DNA from: Trichosphaerium sp. ATCC 40318
Lineage: Eukaryota > Protista > Tubulinea
Direction of reading: 5' to 3'
Length of the DNA: 64,000 nt
NCBI GenBank assembly: GCA_038496445.1
Contig: JALMLS010000619.1
Coordinates: 1 to 64,000, forward strand
Under the pieces are notes generated by a model, which made no database searches, was not told the origin of the DNA, and saw nothing but the letters and a program-made list of their open reading frames with translations. Of the stretch, positions 4,113 to 64,000 are shown one piece after another (within the stretch, counting starts at the first letter, position 1; every line of letters starts with the position of its first letter). Both the position numbers and the translations under genes were made by a program.

Positions 4113-5534
4113 ATTATAATCAACTTGTGCTTCAGCACTCCATTTACTGTAATTTGTTTTCTATTTTTAATACCACCAACGACCATTTTTTGACTTGCGT
4201 TTTCGTTTATTTCGACAATATGGCACGCTTGCAAATAGGTAGTACGGATCCCTTTTGTGGCTACAAAGCAAAAGTTGCACTTTACAATTACTGGCCGTTT
4301 TTGTTGTACTAGCTGAAAAATTCGTTGTGAAAGCAACGAGGCCATTTAGGGATAGAGCGTAGTTCGTTCTACACCTTTTAAACGCAAAAGCCGTTTAAAA
4401 CTGCGCGCAACAGTCCAAACAATACCACAACATAGTACTGTAAACTCACATGACCAAAAAGTTCAATTGGACACCTAATGAAGTCAGATGAATGTCAGTG
4501 AAAAAGAGACATCGAGATCTCAAAAATATGCTACTTCATATTTTATTCAGGGTGCACTTGCATTGGAAGGGGTAATTCAGGTTACTATTGTTGCGTCACG
4601 TACGTCAAAAGATCGGTAGAAAGATCTTTTCCTTTAAAAGTGGGAAGAAATGACTCCTTTTTTTATGTCTCAACAACGAGATGTCGGTACGCCAAACGCC
4701 AATAACAGCTTTTCTGTGTAGCACAACTGGAAATTTGCGTACTTTTCATACGTTTTCTGCATTTTCTACATATTAGGTTAACAACACAATGACGGACGTC
4801 TACAATTTGCGAGAAACAAGAAAGTACACCGGATACAACAAAGCTCACCCCGGCCACGACCTTTCAAAATGGATGCAAGCCAACGGTTGGCGGGTAACAA
4901 ACAAAAACAGAATGTATACTGTAGAGGCTCGCAAGAAAGGCGCCCATGTAAATTTTCGAGTGCGTAATAGTTATTGGAAAAAAAAAAAAAGTCAAAGCGT
5001 TCGTAGCGCCTTTATCAGTAAAGGCATATTGAGTAGAGTGTCTAATGTCCGTTTAGCCTGAATTCAAAGCAACGTTTACAACGGCTTCGGATGGAAGCAT
5101 GACAATAACAATTCACTCCTACGCCACCATAAAAGTAGTAACAGGCACAGTGGTACGTACACGCTTCTTTTGTCCATTTTTTTGTTTTGCCCTCTCTTGT
5201 AATTATGCCACGTGCTAGTGGTGAAAAAAATGTCACAAGTTTTTTTAAAACGACACATGACATCTTTAACTTACTTGTGCTAAAACGTGGCTGCAAAAAA
5301 CTAACCCACATTAGGTCGGTGTTCTTACTGGCGGCATAAGCGCAGCTGTTGGAGTTGGTACCTTTGCAGTGCACGCTTCTGGTGCTGAAGCTTTTTTGAG
5401 GCAAGTTTGGATCTTTATTGAATCACACGCTGCTTCTCCTCCTGAAGTCTTACAACAAGTTGGGTACGACACGCAATACTACTCGTACTATTGAAGCTAA
5501 CACGAATAGATTCAAACACTTAGTACCAAAACAA

Positions 5535-6194
5535 ATGGATAACCCAACGCAATCTAGTCCTTCCCCACAGCCTGCGCGTCCTTCGCAACCGTACCCGAAC
5601 CAATCGTACGGACAACAACCAGGACAATATGCGCATCACGCACAACCGACATACCCCACGCAATCGTACGGACGGCAACCAGGACAACCTCTACATTCCC
5701 CCCAACCTGTGCATCGTGCCTATCCCGCTCAACAATACCCACCACAGCAAGCATATGGCCAACCTCAACCTCATCAGTCACCGCAACCAACACATCAAGC
5801 CTATCCTGCGCAACATTATCCACCACAGCAAGCATATGCGCAGCAACCACATCAACAAACACAAAGTCACCAGCCTGAACAACATTCAGTACAATACTCA
5901 TCCGACCATTCACAATCCCCTGTGCAATACCGAGCGAATTATGCTCCGCCAGCTCAACAGCCGCTTCAGCACTATGGTTCCCAAGAACACCTCAGCCAAA
6001 CCACCAGTCAATACACTGCTCAAGCTCCAACAAATGCGACAGCGTCACCTCCTGCATTAGACGCTAGAAAGCAAGAAATCCAAAAAACAATCGCCACAAA
6101 GCAAGCAGAGCTGAACGATCTTGAAAAGAGAGCTGCGCAAATACGTGTTGAAATAGCTACACTGAATGTAGAATTGTTGAATGTACGAGAATAA
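5535..6194 (+). CDS. Intronless Q/P/Y/H-rich low-complexity protein with C-terminal coiled coil
   Basis: Long ORF, first ATG at 5535. Internal repeats (YPNQSYGQQPGQ/YPTQSYGRQPGQ; AYPAQQYPPQQAY/AYPAQHYPPQQAY) and a heptad tail RKQEIQKTIATKQAELNDLEKRAAQIRVEIATLNVEL. Confidence 0.7.
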   Translation: MDNPTQSSPSPQPARPSQPYPNQSYGQQPGQYAHHAQPTYPTQSYGRQPGQPLHSPQPVHRAYPAQQYPPQQAYGQPQPHQSPQPTHQAYPAQHYPPQQAYAQQPHQQTQSHQPEQHSVQYSSDHSQSPVQYRANYAPPAQQPLQHYGSQEHLSQTTSQYTAQAPTNATASPPALDARKQEIQKTIATKQAELNDLEKRAAQIRVEIATLNVELLNVRE

Positions 6195-47405: not shown

Positions 47406-50400
47406 ATGTCTTCCAGCCTAAAGTGGTCCGACGTGCTTTGCGAAGAAGAAAAAAGTTGTGTAAATGTAGCACTTCACCCGGACGGACAGTACGCGCCTCA
47501 TTACGTCTTTTAGCGTACTAAGACTATATGGAGGCATATATTTCTGTGTTCTCACGAAAACAACGATGTTACAGTGTTAGATATCAAAAACAGTGATGCC
47601 AACCCAGAAATTGTGCCACACGAGGAAGGAGTATACGCAGTAACGACTACTATAAAAGTAAGCGTTAAAAAAAAAGAATCAAGACTAACGTAAACGTAGG
47701 GTGATATGTTTGCTACAGCTTGTGGCGATCGTGGGTTGTATTTGTACGAGTACCCTTCAAAAGGTGGCAATTTCACAAAAACACTCTTAACACGCTTCGA
47801 AAACGCTGTATATGACGCAAAGTTCGATCCTACAGATGAACGTGTCGCTGGCGCAGGGTACGTTTCTTAAATTTGCTCATCAACGCAAAAACAGCGTTAA
47901 ATACTAGCGAAATGCACCGCAGCTTTGTTTCTAGCAGTTCTGATCATTTTTTTTTTCAACGGTTAATTAAATATTTGAAACTAATCAGAGTTTTCTAGCG
48001 CTGACGGTGTCATTCGTATTGTTTCAGTAGTTGGAGGCGATTTAAAGCTATTAAAGGGACATACTAGCTCTGTTACAACAGTTGCTTTCGATCCACAACG
48101 AAAATACCTTGTACGTTTAGAACCCGCTCGACGTTGTCCTTGAATACACAATTGAGCTCCAAACGATCTCTCTGTGACGTTCTTTTACTGTCACAAAACT
48201 TTTTATTTCATTTCATTTCTTACGCCGATTCTAGGCTTCTACAAGTACTGATTGTACTTTACGCATATGGAATCTAGACAAAGAAGAAGATTCAGAAGTA
48301 CACAAAGCGGAAATGCTCCCTAAGGGCGGAATTACACAAAAACAACCTCATCGCATATCCTGGAATATTGATGGCTCACTTCTCGCTGTGCCAACTGCAA
48401 AAGGTATGCGCGATGCGCGTTTTTCTTGTTTTTTGTGTTTTTCGTGTATTTTTAATGATTGTCTCGTTAGGTGTCGTTTTATTACAACGTGGCAGTTGGA
48501 AGGTTGTTGGAGAGTTTAAAGAGCATAATGTAGAAGCAGTTGCAACGGTACGTGCTGTTCCTTTTTTTCTTTTGGTTTTTTTTTCTTATTTTTTTTTTGT
48601 AGATGTTTTCTCCTCGTGGTGAGTTCTTAGTTTCCAGTCATGTTGATGGAAGTGTTTTATTATGGAATGTAAAAACAAAAGAGTCTTTAGAGCGTCACAG
48701 ATGTGATTCTCGCGTTACTTCAATGGCATGGAATACTAAGGTAAACGCCTGAGGTTTTGAACTATTTTTGGTCTAGTTCGTTTTTAACTGTTCTTTTAGG
48801 ATAATGCTGTCATTCTAGTCAACGAGGACGGCGAGTTTGCTGTATGGGATAACATACTCTCTTCACACATGAAGCGTGAAGAGACTGGTACTGTAAAGAA
48901 AAACCCTATCGACTCTCAAAGAAAGCAGATTGAGAAGTGCGTTGTACTTCTTTTTTATTTCTCCTACTTCGCTTCTTCTAACCGACCTTGATGTAGTTTA
49001 ACCAGTATGTTCCTTGATGATGAGTGCGATGTTGATGAAGATGTTGAGATGGAACAAATCTCTGCTGCTAATATCATAACGTGCGTAACGAAGCTATGAA
49101 AAAAAAAACCTAAGAACCTACCTGGATTTCTAATTCGACAGATATTTTTCTGCCCTCGTGACTGTTTATTGTCAACTTTATTTTCCCGCGTATATGTATT
49201 TTCCTTGGTTATTTTTTGACAGTATGTTTAGTAAACCAACGACAAAGCAAACGAAAAAAGTAAATAGACGTGTTGCTAAATCATCGAAAGTCTTGGACTC
49301 TGATGAAGAAGATGAGTTATTAGGCCAACTCGCACAAGAAGAAGAAGAAATGGATGATATTCCTGAAACACAAATACCTGTACGTCTCAATTGTGACATG
49401 AGTAGTAGACTGTGAATCTGACTTTTTCGAAAACTAGGATTACGTTGATTTTGAAACAAAAAGATTTGGATCTGTTGACAAACAAAGACAAACAACACTC
49501 ACCAGTCACTTGAAACCTGTACATATTGATGATATTTCACCAACTGTTAGAGCACCTCAAGCTCCTTTTCAACCAAATGCTTCGCCTATTGGAGAACAAA
49601 GAAGGTTTCTCGGTGCGTTTTAATTTCAAATCCTATTTTTTTCTCTTTTTTCTTGTTTTTAACGATTTCGCGCTTACATTGATTTTTTTAGCTTGGAACA
49701 ACCATGGTTCAGCAGTATCACGATACGACGGTGTTACTTCTTATATTGACATTGAGTTTGCTGACTTGGGACGTCACAGAAACTTCAGCCTTTCCAAAAA
49801 TTTTGCAATCGGTACGTTGGGTTTTTTTGTGTTGTTCAACGGTTTTTTACTGATTGTAACGCCTAGATTTCGGCGCTGTTGCTGATGACGCTTTGGTATT
49901 AGCTAGCCCTGGCACCCTTTTCTACAGAAAATATGATAACTTTATGTGGGAGTCATCTCAAGGGTGGTCAATCAATCTAGTAGACAAAGAAGCCATTCAA
50001 CGTACACGCTTTTTTTTTCACAAAATGTCAGGCGTCAGCCGCTTGTACTTTACCGTTATTACTCGTTCTGTTGTGGCTAAGACGTATGTATAGTTCTTGC
50101 TGCTGGTACTGGATTTGTTGCTATTGGTACAACAAACAACTACGTCCGCATCTTTTGCTCTGGTGGTATGGAAAAGTACGTCTTTCTTATCTGTTTTTTT
50201 TATACTTGACACGTCATTAACGTTATTTACTTCTAGAGCCATCCTTTGTTTCGGTCCTTTACTGTCAATGTCTGCTCAAGAGCATATTCTCGCTATTGTA
50301 TACCATGCAGGCATGTACTCTATCAACTTGTTTGAAATCAACGGCTATCTTGCTTATGTTTTTTTTTGCTTTAGGTTCTAGCCGTAAATTAGTTCTCATG

Positions 50401-52137
50401 GATACACGTGACCGTTCAGTTGTATATCATAAAGACTTACCTTGTCCTGCTAATGTTAATCTAACATGGATTGGGTTCTCTCGTGATGGTATTTTCCATA
50501 TTCTCAGAGATGACGGTAAAATGTTGTGTTTGGCTCATTGGGAAGAGTAAGTTTGCTTTTTTTTTTTGGGCTTTGTTTTTAATTTCGGTTTTCGAATCTA
50601 TACTGATGTTTATGGTAGCGACAAACCTTGTGGTGGACTATGGCAAGTTGTTCTTGAGGTTGACCAAAAGAGACGTATCTGGCCTATTCAGATTCAGTCC
50701 AGCGGAACACTTTTATACCTTCCTTTGTTGGTACGTAATGCTTTTTGTTTCTTTTTTGTCATCAAGAACGATGTTGTATTTTCGCACGTGATATTTACAC
50801 AATGTTAGGCTGATGAGATAGCACCAAGGAATGTCAGTGCACGAAGGCCTGTACCAAGTACCATGAAGTAAGTTAGAAGAACGAGCTTTTTTACTTTTTT
50901 CCTCGTTTGGTTTGCTGATTTTTTTTTCAAAAGGGTTCGCGCACCTGTGTTGACACAAGACTCAAAGTATGCTGCGTTTGGCGAAAAGTTCATGAGAGAC
51001 TCCATTCGTTATCACACTTTGGAACCAGCACTTGAAGAAGGTCCTGAACTGTTGCAGGAGCAAATTAAACTCGATAAGATTGCTTTGCAATTGTTCCAAG
51101 TACGCCTTTTTTTTTTTCTCGTTTTTACATTTTTCGGCTGTTAGAGGATCAACACCTTTATCTTCTCTATCCTCACGCTTTGTCTACGATTATCCAAAGC
51201 ATTGCTTCTTTTAAAACCAAATTTAAACCTACAACTAGTTTACAAAACAGTTTGTCGATCGTTTTCTTCTCCTCCACCTTTGCTTACATTTCTACCTTAG
51301 ATTGCCTGTGAGAAGGGTAAACAAGAACGTGCGTTGAATCTTGCTAAAGATCTATTACTCGGTGGTTCGATAGAAGGTGCCCTTCAGTTGGCATTCAATA
51401 AGCAAGTATGTATTATTCAATTCCCTCTTTGTATAGCACGTGTTAACTTTTTTTTGTTCAGCTTCGTGGTTTGACTGAGCGTATCACAGCATTCAGAGAT
51501 TCTGAATTTGGCGAACAAGAAGAAGAGTCTGAAGAGGAGCTAGAGTTATCTATTGAAGACGATACGTCAAGCCGCTCTGTAAAGCGTAGAAGAGTTGATT
51601 ACAACAAGAGCCAAGCGACAAAAACGTAAGCCCTTTAATTTGAAAACGTTTTTCTTTTTGCGTTGACTGACATTGTGTTGTAGTGATCGCTTGGTTTCTG
51701 AGCCTGTTGAAGACGTTAGTGATGATGACTCTGATGATGCTATGGACGAGGATGTTGAAGAAAATGATGATAAAGAGAACAGTACGGAGAAGTTATCGCG
51801 TCAGCAATTTGTTCTTTTTTTTTTTCATTTATATTTGTTTGTTCATTTTTTTTTCCATTAGAGCAAGCCAACATTACTAAGAAACCTTTCAATCCTTTTG
51901 CTTCTAAGAAGAAGAAAGTCAGTGGGGGTAATGGTACGTCTTCTTACCTGAAACATGATGTCTTGAGAGCAGAAAACAGCATAGAGATTTCTTCGTTTTA
52001 GTAATGAACTTTTTTGTATTGACTTTTTTTCAGGTTGCATCTTCTCTACAATCGGTGGTATTGTATCAAAAGGAAAGGATAGTCCTCTTACACAACGTAC
52101 AAAGGGTAGAAAGAGAAAATTACAATCTGGGTTGTAA
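47406..52137 (+). CDS. WDHD1: WDHD1/And-1/Ctf4 replisome adaptor (WD40 plus SepB/Mcl1-mid domain)
   Basis: N-terminal WD40 repeats (LKGHTSSVTTVAFDP..ASTSTDCTLRIWN) and the family signature APFQPNASP..RRFLAWNNHG..IDIEFAD, followed by LTWIGFS and a helical ACEKGKQERALNLA region. Confidence 0.88.
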
Positions 52138-55805: not shown

Positions 55806-56741
55806 TTTCCAAGTCCTGCCATCTATTACACCAACCTTGTTTGGGAGCCTTGAAAATATAATATGAGTACATCTTTTGTCGATAATCTGGGTCAATTCCA
55901 TATTTATGAATCAACTTAAAAGGTAGGGATCAAAAAAATGACTGAAGCAGCGTGGAATAAGAAGGGAATCTTATCAGCAGTGCAATATTTGCAATTCTTA
56001 TTGCTATTGCCGGATTACCTTTTATCACCATGGAGACGAGGTCACTATTACTAGCCTTTACATTGGTTTGCTATCACGAGTGATGCTGTACCAACATACG
56101 AACAAAGTTGTTACAAAAGTTTTGATTCATTTGGTATATGTACTTCCTTCTGGCTTCAGCTAACTTTGCGAGAGAGCTCTACATCAATGTATTGTGACAT
56201 AAAGGCAATGGAAACGAACATCCCTTACTTGCTCCTTACGCTTACAATGTAACTACCAACGTAAGAAACAATTAACAGGCTTTGCACCGACTGTACTTGG
56301 CGTGTAGCTAGCGTTTAAAAGGCGTAAAGAAATGGTCCGTTTTGCGTCATGTTTTGTTTGATTATCTTTCGCTCTATTTACGCACAATTTCTATTGCGCC
56401 GACCACGCGATCGCATGCATGAAAGCCTGAAGATATAAAAAAAACCCGCAAAAAACACAGCGAGCAAAAATCCATCTCGCCCACGTGATCTTCAAAAAAA
56501 AAACTGAAACTCTGCGTGGCGAGATAGCATAAACTTGCTCAACGAATTCGTTGCGTTGCCGATTCTCGTTATGATAATGTTATTATAACGTTTCATAACG
56601 CAATGTGTTGCCTGGAACGGGTAAAAAAATAGTCCGCAAAAATAACTTCAAAAAGGCTTCCTTTCGAGCGTTATAGCAGATGCGCTCAATTGATTTTTTG
56701 TTCGAAAGTTGTTGAAAAGTCAAAAAAGAACCCGTTTCGCA
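55806..56741. repeat. Direct repeat copy 1 (~0.9 kb); may contain degraded coding fragments on the minus strand
   Basis: Aligns from tttccaagtcctgccatctattacacc to aaaaagaacccgtttcgca with 57777-58599, with many small indels. Confidence 0.9.
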
Positions 56742-57776: not shown

Positions 57777-58599
57777 TTTCCAAGTCCTGCCATCTATTAC
57801 ACCAATTGTTTGGGAGCCTTGAAAATATAATATGAGTACATCTTTTGTCGATAATCTGAATTCCATATTTAAAATCAACTTATCAGGTAGGGATCAAAAA
57901 AATGACTGAAGCAGCGTGGAATAAGAAGGGAATCTTATCAGCAGTGCAATATTTGCAATTCCTATTGCTATTGCCGGATTACCTTTTATCACCATGGAGA
58001 CGAGGTCTTTATTACTAGTTTACATTGGTTTGCTATCACGAGTGATACCAACATACGAACAAAGTTGTTACAAAAGTTTTGATTCATTTGGTATATGTAC
58101 TTCCTTCTGGCTTCAGCTAACTTGTGCGAGAGAGCTCTACATCAATGTATTGTGACATAAAGGCAATGGAAACGAACCATCTCTTCAAAAGTAGCCCATA
58201 CGCATTAAACGTAAAAGGCGTAAAGAAACGGTTTTGCGTCTTGTGTTTGATTATCTTTCGTCTATTTACGCACAATTTCTATTGCGCCGACCACGCGATC
58301 GCATGCATGAAAGCCTGAAGATTAAAAAAAACCCGCAAAAAACAAGTTTCGCCCACGCACTTCAAAAAAAAAACTGAAACTCTGCGTGGCGAGATACATA
58401 ATTGCTCAACGAATGTTGCGTTGCCGATTCTCGTTATGATAATGTTATTATAACGTTTCATAACGCAATGTGTTGCCTGGAACAAAAAAATAGTCCGCAA
58501 AAATAACTTCAAAAAGGCTTCCTTGAGCGTTATGCAGATGCGCTCAATTGATTTTTTGTTTGAAAGTTGTTGAAAAGTCAAAAAAGAACCCGTTTCGCA
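57777..58599. repeat. Direct repeat copy 2 (~0.8 kb)
   Basis: Near-identical to 55806-56741, lacking an internal block after gaaacgaac. Confidence 0.9.
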
Positions 58600-58840: not shown

Positions 58841-60132
58841 AAAACGTGGGTCCGGTAGAATTGTCGCTTGCAGTTTTGACCGCAACACTTTAAGAGCAAA
58901 TGACACTAAGTGGCTTATCAGCAACAAGCAATTGTAAACAAAGTTTCCACCTTGAGTTGATATTTATTCAAGAAAGATTTTAAGTGCGTTCTTGTGCGGT
59001 ATAAAGGAACTTTTCATACTTTTGTCTGCTGGCTGTAGATACATAGCTACGCAATAAAGTGGTAAAAACTAAAAATCATAGCCATTATTTGCAATCTTAG
59101 AACTATAGAATAGTAAGCGTTACGCAACCGCAAATATTCTGTAACGCTTTGACTCACACTGGAAATTCTAACTAGTTGGAGTTCATCTCAGCTCTTCAAA
59201 TGCCCAAATTATTTCAAAACTATTTCTAGGTTTTATTCCTGTACATACAAGGAGCTTTTAGGGCGTACATGATCATAGCTGTACTGATTGCGTTCGGGAT
59301 GCTGGCAAGGAATGAGACTAAAAACAGTTGTGGCTGAAAACCCACGTGTTAAATTGAAAAATTTATCCTCACGTGCTGTCAACAAGTTTTATCGTTTGCC
59401 CCTTCTTAATGTTTCACGCGTTATTGTACCGAGGAACTAATCCTGAACGAAATAGGAACGTAACTGAGTTTTTGGTGTCGTAAACCACTGCTTTAACCTC
59501 TATATATACTATACGCAACGTAACCACGTACAGCCAGTTTTTTGGCAGTAGTTGTAGTATTAAAAAGGGAACAGCAAAGAAAACGCCAAAAAACTACAAA
59601 CGTCGCATAATTTTAAGCAAACGAACCGTATTTTGTGTTTGCGCGTTGTATTGCGCCATATGTATTATCTCCGTATCTTCTCATCGTACGTGTGGGAGAA
59701 GGCTTTGTATATGAACGGGGAGATATGTTGAACGCAAACAATGTACACGAGTTGGAACACAAACAATTCTATGAACCGTCGGCGAAACTTAAATCCATTT
59801 TACCATACAATCAACACTGGTTACAACGCTTCATGGCAGAGCCAGCCACATAGCATCGAAGAATTAGAATTAAAAGGTATTATTAGAAACGAATCTTAGA
59901 TCTACCTCTCCGTGTTATTAAAAATCTTCAATAGCCGAATTGGCGCAGCTTCAATGCAAATACCAATATTACTACATGTACCTCCCTTGTTTAAAATGCA
60001 CGTTCTCTTATAATAAAAACACTTTCTTTATGATTGCTGAAACAAAGTCTACATACTCTTGAACATAGCAAACGACATCTATTCTATTCAGGTTTGTATT
60101 TACCAACACTTAAGTATCAACCCAATTTGTAG

Positions 60133-63100
60133 CTGGCTAACAATCTCCAATGTTATTGTAATGTTATGCCATACAATCAAGATTGAACATTGAAGCAAAA
60201 ATAAAGAATGGCTATACAGCTTTACTTGGTGCAGGTATGATAGTGTTTAAATATAACATCATCTGTTACTCACATACTCTTTAATTGGTAGCATATAATG
60301 GACATGATAATGTGATAAAAGTATTACTTGAATCAGGAGCCAACATTGAAGCCAAAGAAAAAGATGGAAGTACTGCTTTGATTGATGCAGGTATGATAGT
60401 GCTTAACCATAACAACATCTGTTACTCACATACTCTTTAATTGGTAGCCTTTAATGGACATGATAATGTGATAAAAGTATTACTTGAATCAGGAGCCAAC
60501 ATTGAAGCAAAAGAAAAAGATGGAAGTACTGCTTTGATTAATGCAGGTATGATAGTGCTTAACCATAACAACATCTGTTACTCACATACTCTTTAATTGG
60601 TAGCATATAATGGACATGATAATGTGATAAAAGTATTACTTGAATCAGGAGCCAACATTGAAGCCAAAGAAAAAGATGGAATCACTGCTTTAATTAGCGC
60701 AGGTATGATAGTGTTTAACTATAACAGCATCTGTTACTCACATATACTCTTAATTGGTAGCCTATAATGGACATGATAATGTGATAAAAGTATTACTTGA
60801 ATCAGGAGCCAACATTGAAGCCAAAGAAAAAGATGGAAGTACTGCTTTGATTGATGCAGGTATGATAGTGCTTAACCATAACAACATCTGTTACTCACAT
60901 ACTCTTTAATTGGTAGCATATAAAGGACATGATAATGTGATAAAAGTATTACTTGAATCAGGAGCCAACATTGAAGCCAAAGAAAAAAATGGAATCACTG
61001 CTTTAATTAGCGCAGGTATGATAGTGTTTAACCATAACAACATCTGTTACTCACATACTCTTTAATTGGTAGCATATAATGGACATGATAATGTGATAAA
61101 AGTATTACTTGAATCAGGAGCCAACATTGAAGCCAAACAAAAAGATGGAATCACTGCTTTGATTAATGCAGGTATGATAGTGCTTAACCATAACAACATC
61201 TGTTACTCACATACTCTTAATTGGTAGCCTTTAATGGACACGATAATGTGATAAAAGTATTACTTGAATCAGGAGCCAACATTGAAGCCAAACAAAAAAA
61301 TGGAATCACTGCTTTAATTGGCGCAGGTATGATAGTGTTTAACCATAACAACATCTGTTACTCACATACTCTTAATTGGTAGCCTTTAATGGACACGATA
61401 ATGTGATAAAAGTATTACTTGAATCAGGAGCCAACATTGAAGCCAAAGAAAAAGATGGAAGTACTGCTTTGATTGATGCAGGTATGATAGTGCTTAACCA
61501 TAACAACATCTGTTACTCACATACTCTTTAATTGGTAGCATATAATGGACATGATAATGTGATAAAAGTATTACTTGAATCAGGAGCCAACATTGAAGCC
61601 AAAGAAAAAGATGGAATCACTGCTTTAATTAGCGCAGGTATGATAGTGTTTAACCATAACAGCATCTGTTACTCACATATACTCTTAATTGGTAGCCTTT
61701 AATGGACACGATAATGTGATAAAAGTATTACTTGAATCAGGAGCCAATATTGAAGCCAAACAAAAAAATGGAAGTACTGCTTTGATTGATGCAGGTATGA
61801 TTGTGTTTAACCATAACAGCATCTGTTACTCACATATACTCTTAATTGGTAGCCTTTAATGGACACGATAATGTGATAAAAGTATTACTTGAATCAGGAG
61901 CCAACATTGAAGCCAAACGAGACAATGGAAGTACTGCTTTAATTTGTGCAGGTATTTATACAAATAAACTTGATTTGAAGACATTAAATTCATATTAGCA
62001 AAAAATGGCACAACCCAGTTTTGAAAACATTGTTGAAACAAACTATAGACATTTTATTAATTCCAATTGAATGGAAAGAGCTTTAATCAAAATACTAACA
62101 CAGGTGGTTGCTGATGAGCCTGCGTTCATCAATGTGTTTGAAACTCTTTTGACACTGTTTCCAAATGATCAACAAAGTTGTGAACTATGGTTATCATGTG
62201 CTCATATGAAAGAGATACCTCACTGGCGACTCAATCTTGCAAAATGGTTGCAATACTTGGTATGTCTTCCTTTTGTACCAACTATTAAGTACTAATCACA
62301 CAAAGCCAACACGTCCATATTTTAAAGTTGCAATGCAAAAAGGCATTTGTCATTTGATTTGTACATATAATCGCACATTTGTACAATCTTCGGTATGAAC
62401 ACATAATACAAGTATGTGTAATATAATAACTTATTTTGGTTCATTAGAGCTTTTGGTTACAGCAAGGAGAGCTGATGGAAGGAATTCTATCCGACTTACC
62501 AGATGATATGTGGAGTAATACTAAACACACTGGGTCTGTTATTGAAATGTGTATAAAAGAAGGATGGTGTACAAATTCTCTTCAAAAAGTACCCAAGCAA
62601 GATAGTATGTGTTTAGTGGTATTTCTTTTATTAACATTGTACAGCGTTTGCTTGCTATGAGTGTTCTCAATATGGATTGTATTTGTGCAGTTATTGTGCA
62701 ACTCAACATAATCAAAACCACGTAATTGTTTTGTAGTTATTTTGCTAACAGTTTGAGTAGAAGCTCTCTAAGCACATTGGTAGTTTCAAAAAATGTGAAT
62801 GCAAGGATTGCAAACACGTTATTAATCCCATATCTCCAAATCAAAGAGTTGAAAACCCTACAGCAGGTAAAAAAGCACTGTTAGTCCAACCACACTAAAA
62901 CTTGAAGGGTTAAAAAGTGAGACGTCATGGGACTTAAATCCAAGATTACATTATGCCCACACCTGGGATAGATCCAACAGCAAGTGAGTAGTTACTCATT
63001 ATTAACTCATGTTTAACTGGTTTTTGTCAAACAAAAAAGGGGCACAATTGAAAAAGCAACGCACTTCAGAACACTGAATCTTCTTGATTCAAATAAAAAT

Positions 63101-64000
63101 GATATTGTAGCCAAGAGAGAACTACAGTTTCTTTACCAACAAATGTCAACAATGCACGGCTATGATAAATATGATGTTGTAGAAGCTCATCTTGTTTGCA
63201 ATGACATGCTGACTCGAAACTTTGGCATGTACAATACAGTACTTAAACACAGACATCAGTATGTTTACATGTTAATAGACTACAAATAATCTTAGCTGTT
63301 ATTTAGGGAACTCCGTTGGTTGTTTTGTAAAAATGATTGGAAACAGGGAATCAGCAAAAGGCACAAAGAAAATAAGATAAAGGTTGCAGATTGTTATTCA
63401 AAACTTGCTGGTGAAAATACCCCACATTCAAACAATAATTCAGAGCAGGTAGTTTGCCTCTTAAATATAATAATACCTAACCAAAAATCAGCTACCAGTT
63501 GTATTAATGGTTCATGGAACAACTCGTGAAGCCGCTTGGAGTATTGTAAAGGCTGGATTTGGAGTATTAAGTTCGTTGGATGCTGGATACTACGGTCAAG
63601 GAATCTATTTTACAGTATGGTTAAAAAGTCACCATTGCCAATCTGACTTGTTTTTTGAAATAGCACAGCATTGAGTATGCCTGTTCATACGATAAATCTG
63701 CTAAAGACAAGAAGACACTTGTGCTTAGTTTGGTTACGCCTGGGAATGTATATCCTGTACACAACTGCAACCAATCACATTACTGGTTTGTTTACTTACA
63801 AAGCATTGATAGGTTACAGAAAACCCTAAAGATGAAGATAACCTTGTTGGTAAACCAATTAAAGCTGGATATCAAAGTCACTATGTATTGGTAAACAGCA
63901 AAGGACAAGTGTTGGAGCAAGATAAAATAGATAAAGCAGTGTATGATGAGCTAGTTGTAGCTCAAGGTAGTGATTACAATTGATGTACTTTGTTGACTAA
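60133..64000 (+). CDS. Ankyrin-array, helical domain, UBR-type zinc finger, PARP-family ADP-ribosyltransferase; 3' end beyond window; frame breaks flank the array
   Basis: 11 intact ankyrin exons. Zinc finger CTNSLQ..FACYECSQYGLYLCSYCATQHNQNH..KKCECKDC. PARP motifs LMVHGT, DAGYYGQGIYFT..EYACSY, LSLVTPGNVYP, YDELVV. Stops and frameshifts occur at ~60133-60190 and ~62008-62070; the true start was not found. Confidence 0.8.
60235..61951 (+). repeat. Tandem array of 11 intron+exon units (period 155-157 bp; 99-nt ankyrin exon plus 56-58-nt intron)
   Basis: Exons start at 60292, 60448, 60604, 60761, 60917, 61073, 61228, 61383, 61539, 61696 and 61853. Each is preceded by a near-identical intron gtatga..ttactcac..taattggtag. 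Confidence 0.97.

Follow-up and report, generated by a model that had tools for sequence, protein, structure and literature searches.

Fast-evolving recognition proteins, among them fungal NLRs and the brown-algal ROCO and NB-ARC proteins, characteristically combine near-identical repeats with hypervariable contact residues. In fungi, the ANK, TPR, and WD repeats of NLRs (HET-E/NWD in Podospora) undergo concerted evolution by inter-repeat recombination, and high internal conservation has been defined as repeat identity of at least 85% across 100 or more residues (Dyrka et al. 2014, PMC4986451). The LRR-ROCO and NB-ARC-TPR genes of Ectocarpus have one repeat per exon and exon shuffling, with local within-locus duplications and positive selection inferred on solvent-exposed binding residues (Zambounis et al. 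2012, PMC3341825; PMC11378527). In spider silk genes, iterated exon-intron units are homogenized together, probably by unequal crossing-over helped by identical introns (PMC9779670). Among PARPs, ankyrin-bearing members have been described in clades 4 (tankyrase) and 1A, and tankyrases have been reported only in animals (Citarelli et al. 2010, PMC2964712). Here, we describe an array of 11 ankyrin cassettes, each consisting of a short intron and a one-repeat exon, in a predicted ankyrin-PARP gene of the amoeboid protist Trichosphaerium sp. ATCC 40318. The array lies near the end of the stretch of DNA that was analyzed, hereafter the window (contig JALMLS010000619.1 of assembly GCA_038496445.1, positions 1 to 64,000, forward strand). 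We propose that it is probably the binding arm of a lineage-specific gene, amplified in tandem and homogenized, in which diversity at the contact face is kept or driven by selection. Our literature search returned no paper on ankyrin exon-intron cassette arrays in PARP genes.

Tandem Repeats Finder detected a single array at 60186-61955, with a period of 156, 11.3 copies, 92% matches, and 0 indels. Parsing at the recurrent TGGTAG and CAGGTAT sites resolved positions 60235-61951 of the plus strand into 11 tandem units of 155-157 bp, each comprising a GT..AG intron of 56-58 nt (GTATGA...TAG) and an exon of exactly 99 nt. Since each cassette exon ends in a G that opens the next codon, the exons are in phase 1/1, and one exon corresponds to one 33-residue repeat. 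An initial annotation of this DNA, made from the sequence alone, had described 11 near-identical units in which introns were duplicated together with exons, as well as one repeat per symmetric 99-nt phase-1/phase-1 exon; repeat detection, splice-site parsing, unit alignment, and translation bear out this description. In protein, the repeats are 85-100% identical over 363 residues, with 26 of the 33 columns invariant (n=11), and nine of the 11 repeats have distinct sequences. The central scaffold is invariant in protein, as had also been stated, and its DNA holds five synonymous variable sites. An invariant run of 38 nt occupies the exon center (P=0.002 for random placement); as a search word, it has 11 mismatch-free copies in the 64-kb window, all in the array, against 0 expected by chance, and no exact match in the metagenome contigs.

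The cassette repeat is assigned by its sequence to the ankyrin repeats (Pfam Ank clan), as the predicted 33-residue helix-turn-helix matches the family profile. A single cassette exon scored 20.3 bits against Pfam Ank (E=6.7e-4; cut-off, 21.1), and a profile of the 11 repeats matched ankyrin-1/2 (E=4e-46), the consensus four-repeat protein 1N0R (2e-32), and many designed ankyrin repeat proteins (DARPins) in the PDB. The minimum free energy of folding gave z-scores of +0.36 for the cassette intron and +0.53 for the whole unit relative to shuffled controls; with no structure beyond that of the shuffles, there is no sign of a hidden structured RNA in the intron or unit. Similarly, an Rfam scan of the whole window returned no RNA family.

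The array resembles the fungal NLR repeats in its internal conservation, which lies within the published definition, in its hypervariable binding-face positions, and in its concerted evolution. It differs from them in that its repeats are separate exons with an intron inside the unit, in its C-terminal PARP-like partner, and in its protist host. With the Ectocarpus genes, it shares one repeat per small exon and frame-preserving phase-1/1 boundaries. However, those genes combine LRR or TPR repeats with a ROCO GTPase or NB-ARC domain instead of ankyrin with PARP, and the units of the present array are far more alike (92% in DNA, including introns). The likeness to both systems, noted in the initial annotation, is apt. 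Spider silk provides a published precedent for the joint homogenization of exons and introns, although silks are fibre-forming structural proteins whose low-complexity repeats have no hypervariable binding surface. In the array, the signature of near-identical repeats with variable contacts occurs in ankyrin repeats encoded one per exon, with an intron within the unit, joined to a predicted ADP-ribosylating domain in place of a nucleotide-binding switch.

Among the aligned cassette units, 26 of 157 columns are variable. The introns vary at 7-9 of 58 columns, with a pairwise diversity of 0.047, and the scaffold codons have a diversity of 0.025 over all sites, made up of 0 at nonsynonymous and 0.10 at synonymous sites. 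In the seven remaining codons, diversity reaches 0.24 (nonsynonymous, 0.22), so that nonsynonymous diversity there exceeds both intron diversity and scaffold synonymous diversity. Two codons have two or three nucleotide differences, and one of these has five alleles. The residues involved are exactly those listed in the initial annotation (Y/F, N/K, E/Q/R, K/D, D/N, S/I, and D/N/S/G/C). Their place on the repeat surface was predicted by alignment to consensus ankyrins and DARPins, together with the position sets of PMC8415598, in whose numbering they are positions 32, 33, 1, 3, 8, 11, and 12. All seven fall in the 14-position concave set (32-12; P=8e-4), and the alignment thus agrees with the claim that variation is confined to the putative concave face. 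They include positions 1, 3, 8, and 33, reported as the most diverse and the most enriched in protein-protein contacts (PMC8415598). The 19 scaffold residues off the concave face show no change in the array. In the diverged array of a homologue, encoded by contig L001, the helix-2 and convex positions vary freely, and none of these varies in the present array, indicating that the uniformity of the array scaffold stems from recent common ancestry or homogenization more than from protein constraint.

This arrangement recalls DARPin libraries, in which an identical framework repeat likewise carries varied residues at beta-turn and helix-1 positions. In what we take to be the DARPin numbering of Binz et al., the variable residues are 1, 2, 3, 5, 10, 13, and 14, and five of the seven (2, 3, 5, 13, and 14) are presumably library positions (P=5e-4), consistent with the overlap that had been noted. 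Unlike a library, the array is natural and has two to five alleles per position; in the same numbering, position 33 is fixed and positions 1 and 10 vary. The image of a natural DARPin-like library, put forward in the initial annotation, suits the pattern; the resemblance does not extend to family membership.

The units are also mosaics of one another. The four-gamete test was failed by 91 of 153 informative site pairs, with at least eight recombination intervals (minimum number, Rm) within 156 bp, which upholds the earlier claim that variant halves have been reassorted between units by recombination. Such a mosaic is consistent with unequal crossing-over and conversion between units. Unit 3 is identical to unit 9, and units 2-4 are similar in sequence to units 8-10; this offset-6 similarity suggests a multi-unit duplication. 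The common synonymous variants (codons 1, 5, and 30) adjoin variable codons, and one intron variant is linked to the 3' block of the preceding exon; old haplotype blocks kept around selected sites would be expected to show this pattern. When six positions were set a priori from the literature, the variable nonsynonymous share exceeded that of the introns and scaffold synonymous sites taken together (P=3e-4 to 1e-3).

The spliced reading frame is open from 60182 to the window end (851 codons, interrupted by 22 introns of 39-129 nt, all GT..AG), and the gene runs off the window end. It is important to consider that the RNA-like evidence used here and below consists of assembled contigs at ≥92% identity, not reads, and that no run is recorded as RNA. 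GT..AG joints in contigs of four public runs back eight of the eleven introns 3' of the array; the introns at 61952-62080, 62722-62760, and 63449-63491 were placed from the reading frame. The linker exons that follow the array had no Pfam match, SAM included, when scanned in pieces, and are family-specific, being colinear with the homologue P0001 (encoded by L001) at 37% identity. Between the linker and the PARP region, a Cys/His-rich segment (62448-62866) contains several CxxC pairs and is without counterpart in P0001. Its exons at 62645-62866 look like a zinc finger by sequence; a UBR-type label was considered and not confirmed, as the exon pieces, submitted singly, matched no Pfam zinc-finger family. 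The next exons include a 72-aa pre-catalytic exon with only two matches among 1.84 billion cluster-representative proteins.

The C-terminal domain is predicted to be a divergent PARP-like catalytic domain. One exon in the window matched Pfam PARP (PF00644) weakly, at 17.8 bits (E=0.0025; cut-off, 26.7), and two transcript-derived homologues colinear with the gene model, P0001 and P0002, lie above this cut-off at 30.9 and 36.5 bits, respectively; their identity to the model is 58-59%. In the PDB, a profile of the PARP region matched PARP12 (E=0.001), followed by PARP4 and PARP10; a phmmer search of the PDB with the PARP region of a homologue returned no match. Of the H-Y-E catalytic triad, the His of VHGT and the Tyr of YGQGIYF align to FHGT and YGKGSYF of PARP12, and the putative catalytic Glu, in YDELVV, is placed by motif position only.

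Contig L001 is a spliced transcript with seven ankyrin repeats (Pfam Ank_2, E=2.9e-38), a linker, the PARP domain, and a coiled-coil tail. With P0001 as the query, seven relatives were found among 5.8 billion proteins, none of them named; one also has ankyrin repeats. Together with the colinear homologues, these few relatives indicate that the gene belongs to a rare, unannotated ankyrin-PARP family, which is almost unsampled in protein collections. A search for related loci with P0002 gave 17 distant loci in which the PARP-like domain is on Cys-rich or other proteins without ankyrin motifs; these loci are thus uninformative on the array. In three metagenome contigs (L003, L004, and L005), the PARP-like domain (GYYGQGIYF ... 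GYQSHY) is C-terminal in open reading frames of ~900-2,200 aa, with Cys-rich repeats in or just upstream of those frames and no ankyrin motifs, an arrangement indicating that the domain is combined with different N-terminal arms in other organisms.

As in tankyrases, the ankyrin repeats are N-terminal of the PARP domain, and by analogy they would likely mediate target recruitment. Unlike tankyrases, the present gene has homogenized repeats and a divergent catalytic domain, and its homologue has a coiled-coil tail. Identity with tankyrase was rejected, as no SAM, WGR, or PRD was found and the nearest solved catalytic domains are those listed above. No NACHT, NB-ARC, or other sensor-signalling domain was found in the exon pieces scanned from the gene model (60182 onward) or in P0001 and P0002. 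The terms "receptor" and "diversifiable," applied to the array in the initial annotation, therefore describe what such an array might be, whereas the domain to which it is joined is a PARP-like enzyme.

Taken with the PARP-like partner, the pattern of variation can be accounted for as follows. A 156-bp cassette, made of a short intron and a symmetric 99-nt exon, was amplified in tandem into an ankyrin arm; because the exon is symmetric, the arm changes by exactly one repeat, without a frameshift, whenever a unit is gained or lost. The units form a mosaic of a few variant blocks, which bears the mark of germline exchange between them by unequal crossing-over and gene conversion. The introns and the rest of the repeat are homogenized, with amino acid differences only at the seven concave beta-turn and first-helix positions, where selection may keep or drive contact-residue diversity against homogenization. 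Successive repeats would thus offer different contact surfaces, and the specificity of the array could shift quickly over generations. By analogy to tankyrase-type logic, the array may recruit targets for ADP-ribosylation by the C-terminal domain.

Several observations weigh against this account. The whole-exon ratio of nonsynonymous to synonymous polymorphism (pN/pS) is 0.37. A permutation test of codon clustering of the variable sites, corrected for its post hoc choice, gave P=0.06 and is not used as support. With all 14 concave codons in the comparison, the excess over neutral proxies weakens to P=0.02-0.09. Codon-model tests are unreliable with only 11 recombining 99-nt sequences, and short introns may be constrained, which makes them a poor neutral yardstick. 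Furthermore, the 5' end of the gene was not found and the exon preceding the array is broken by stops, so that this copy may be damaged. Copy number and order rest on the assembly, no public run holding more than 17% of the sampled words, and the RNA contigs fit paralogues as well as the present locus.

The first of these points lead to a neutral explanation, in which a very young tandem duplication has been homogenized by conversion and the differences simply mark the least constrained surface residues. It would agree with the low whole-exon ratio, with the corrected clustering and with the loss of significance when 14 codons are left free, and in ankyrin repeats at large, it is the concave positions that vary most (PMC8415598). 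On the other hand, the convex and helix-2 positions, which are free in L001, are unchanged in the array; two codons have accumulated multiple differences, one of them five alleles, while introns differ by ~5%; and the a priori position set gave P≤1e-3. We regard neutrality as unlikely. The evidence for substitution above the neutral rate at the contact codons is suggestive, not decisive, since the choice of test set moves P between 3e-4 and 0.09.

The state of the 5' side bears on whether the gene is intact. Upstream of the array lies unit 0, a degenerate twelfth ankyrin exon of 102 nt. Its 5' half has two stops in the array frame, and its last 53 nt (from 60182) are in the array frame and encode LNIEAKIKNGYTALLGA; an alternative acceptor at 60181 preserves that frame. 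In X2/X7 contigs, a variant of unit 0 that lacks single bases at 60138, 60149, and 60169 and has G>T at 60135 would encode an intact 99-nt, 33-residue diverged ankyrin repeat. Thus, either the first repeat of the present copy is damaged or the acceptor at 60181 is used instead. Enumeration of ATG/GT/AG paths gave 10-24 equally weak upstream models, none of which was adopted, and none of the start codons could be confidently connected to the array. Upstream of the gene, ~8 kb is without clear coding sequence and partly duplicated. A contig of X2 joins a point near 59874 to 59933 (59863-59933), skipping ~58 nt with GT..AG-like ends, which hints at small upstream exons of the present gene or of a paralogue. 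A segment of ~0.9 kb occurs twice, at 55837-56741 and 57806-58599, 1.9 kb apart and with 93-100% identity; tandem duplication or a mobile element might account for it.

The stops in unit 0, the missing start codon and the gene-poor upstream DNA would be expected of an ankyrin-PARP family member that has become a pseudogene, by decay or by truncation at its 5' end. Against this, 851 codons in 22 exons run without stops or frameshifts, the splice sites are all canonical, nonsynonymous change in the scaffold is zero, the acceptor at 60181 preserves the frame, and contigs of run X1 at ≥99% identity cover the exons. A pseudogene is consequently improbable in our judgment.

Contigs aligned to the locus contain spliced junctions, indicating that RNA is present in them. 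Some join cassette exon directly to cassette exon with the intron removed, so splicing of the cassette type is supported. Skipping a symmetric exon is frame-safe, which is compatible with programmed diversification, in which many receptor forms would arise from one gene through skipped exons, combinatorial splicing, or the somatic rearrangement of its cassettes. However, a joint that appears to skip 525 is equally a normal unit 9-unit 10 junction, because unit 3 equals unit 9 and the start of unit 7 equals that of unit 10. A CCAT variant that the array lacks marks other odd joints, which hence derive from paralogues. One joint links the end of unit 6 to a Y-type exon start; it corresponds to no pair of neighbours in the array and would favour this explanation, yet it is uninterpretable at ≥92% identity in contigs that are not reads. 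Exon skipping, suggested in the initial annotation, was thus not assignable to the locus in any instance. There was also no sign of somatic or programmed diversification in the form of recombination signal sequences or other machinery, and we consider this explanation extremely unlikely.

A further concern is that near-identical 156-bp repeats are hard to assemble, and that no public DNA run contains more than a sixth of the sampled words, so that the number or order of units could be an assembly error. Nevertheless, most of the repeats differ from one another in protein, the differences follow the codons and keep the frame, and the joints S(AGC)>F and N(AAT)>Y, both formed by neighbours in the array, also occur in the RNA-like contigs. 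An artefact of this kind is very unlikely.

Beyond a binding arm maintained by selection, the ankyrin-cassette PARP genes might form a germline-diversifying recognition system of this marine amoeboid protist, immune-like or engaged in conflict, without an NLR-type domain. Gain, loss, and exchange of cassettes would then retune the ankyrin surface to fast-changing viral, bacterial, or non-self proteins, and the PARP domain would ADP-ribosylate the proteins bound by it. We hold this extension to be doubtful. If it were true, it would represent a new architecture of eukaryotic innate recognition, with a variable ankyrin arm and a PARP effector, and a natural counterpart to DARPin libraries.

The coordinates of the array and of the exons described above are collected in Table 1.

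Table 1. Features of the predicted ankyrin-PARP gene (positions in the window)
Feature	Position	Strand	Basis
Unit 0, degenerate twelfth ankyrin exon, 102 nt	60133..60234	+	Array-like acceptor TTTGTAG|C
Cassette array, 11 units	60235..61951	+	Tandem Repeats Finder, unit alignment, translation, repeat profile vs PDB ankyrins/DARPins
Cassette exon 1 (AYNGH...EKDGSTALIDA)	60292..60390	+	Splice parsing and translation
Example cassette intron, 57 nt, GTATGA..TAG	60391..60447	+	Splice parsing, unit alignment
Cassette exon 2	60448-60546	+	
Cassette exon 3	60604-60702	+	
Cassette exon 4	60761-60859	+	
Cassette exon 5	60917-61015	+	
Cassette exon 6	61073-61171	+	
Cassette exon 7	61228-61326	+	
Cassette exon 8	61383-61481	+	
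Cassette exon 9	61539-61637	+	
Cassette exon 10	61696-61794	+	
Cassette exon 11	61853-61951	+	
Intron, 129 nt, last cassette exon to linker	61952..62080	+	Reading frame and non-canonical, paralogue-type contig joint
Linker exons 62081-62259, 62306-62392, 62448-62604	62081..62604	+	Contig joints 62258>62305, 62391>62447 (GT..AG)
Cys/His-rich exons 62645-62721, 62761-62866	62645..62866	+	Intron 62722-62760 inferred from frame only
Pre-catalytic exons 62908-62983, 63040-63258, 63307-63448	62908..63448	+	Contig joints
Predicted PARP-like catalytic exons 63492-63614, 63664-63756, 63813-63965	63492..63965	+	Motifs HGT, YYGQGIYF, YDELVV; Pfam

Elsewhere in the window, a multi-exon gene at ~47500-51700 (+) weakly matches the first WD40 domain of WDHD1/CTF4 (PF24817, E=1e-5, far short of the cut-off), and its C-terminal tail is acidic. 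Positions 383-476 contain a degenerate 31-nt repeat with TTAGGG-type (GGGTTA) telomere-like motifs, and an 81-nt repeat of 1.9 copies (5685-5838) lies within a Gln/Pro-rich open reading frame at 5418-6194.

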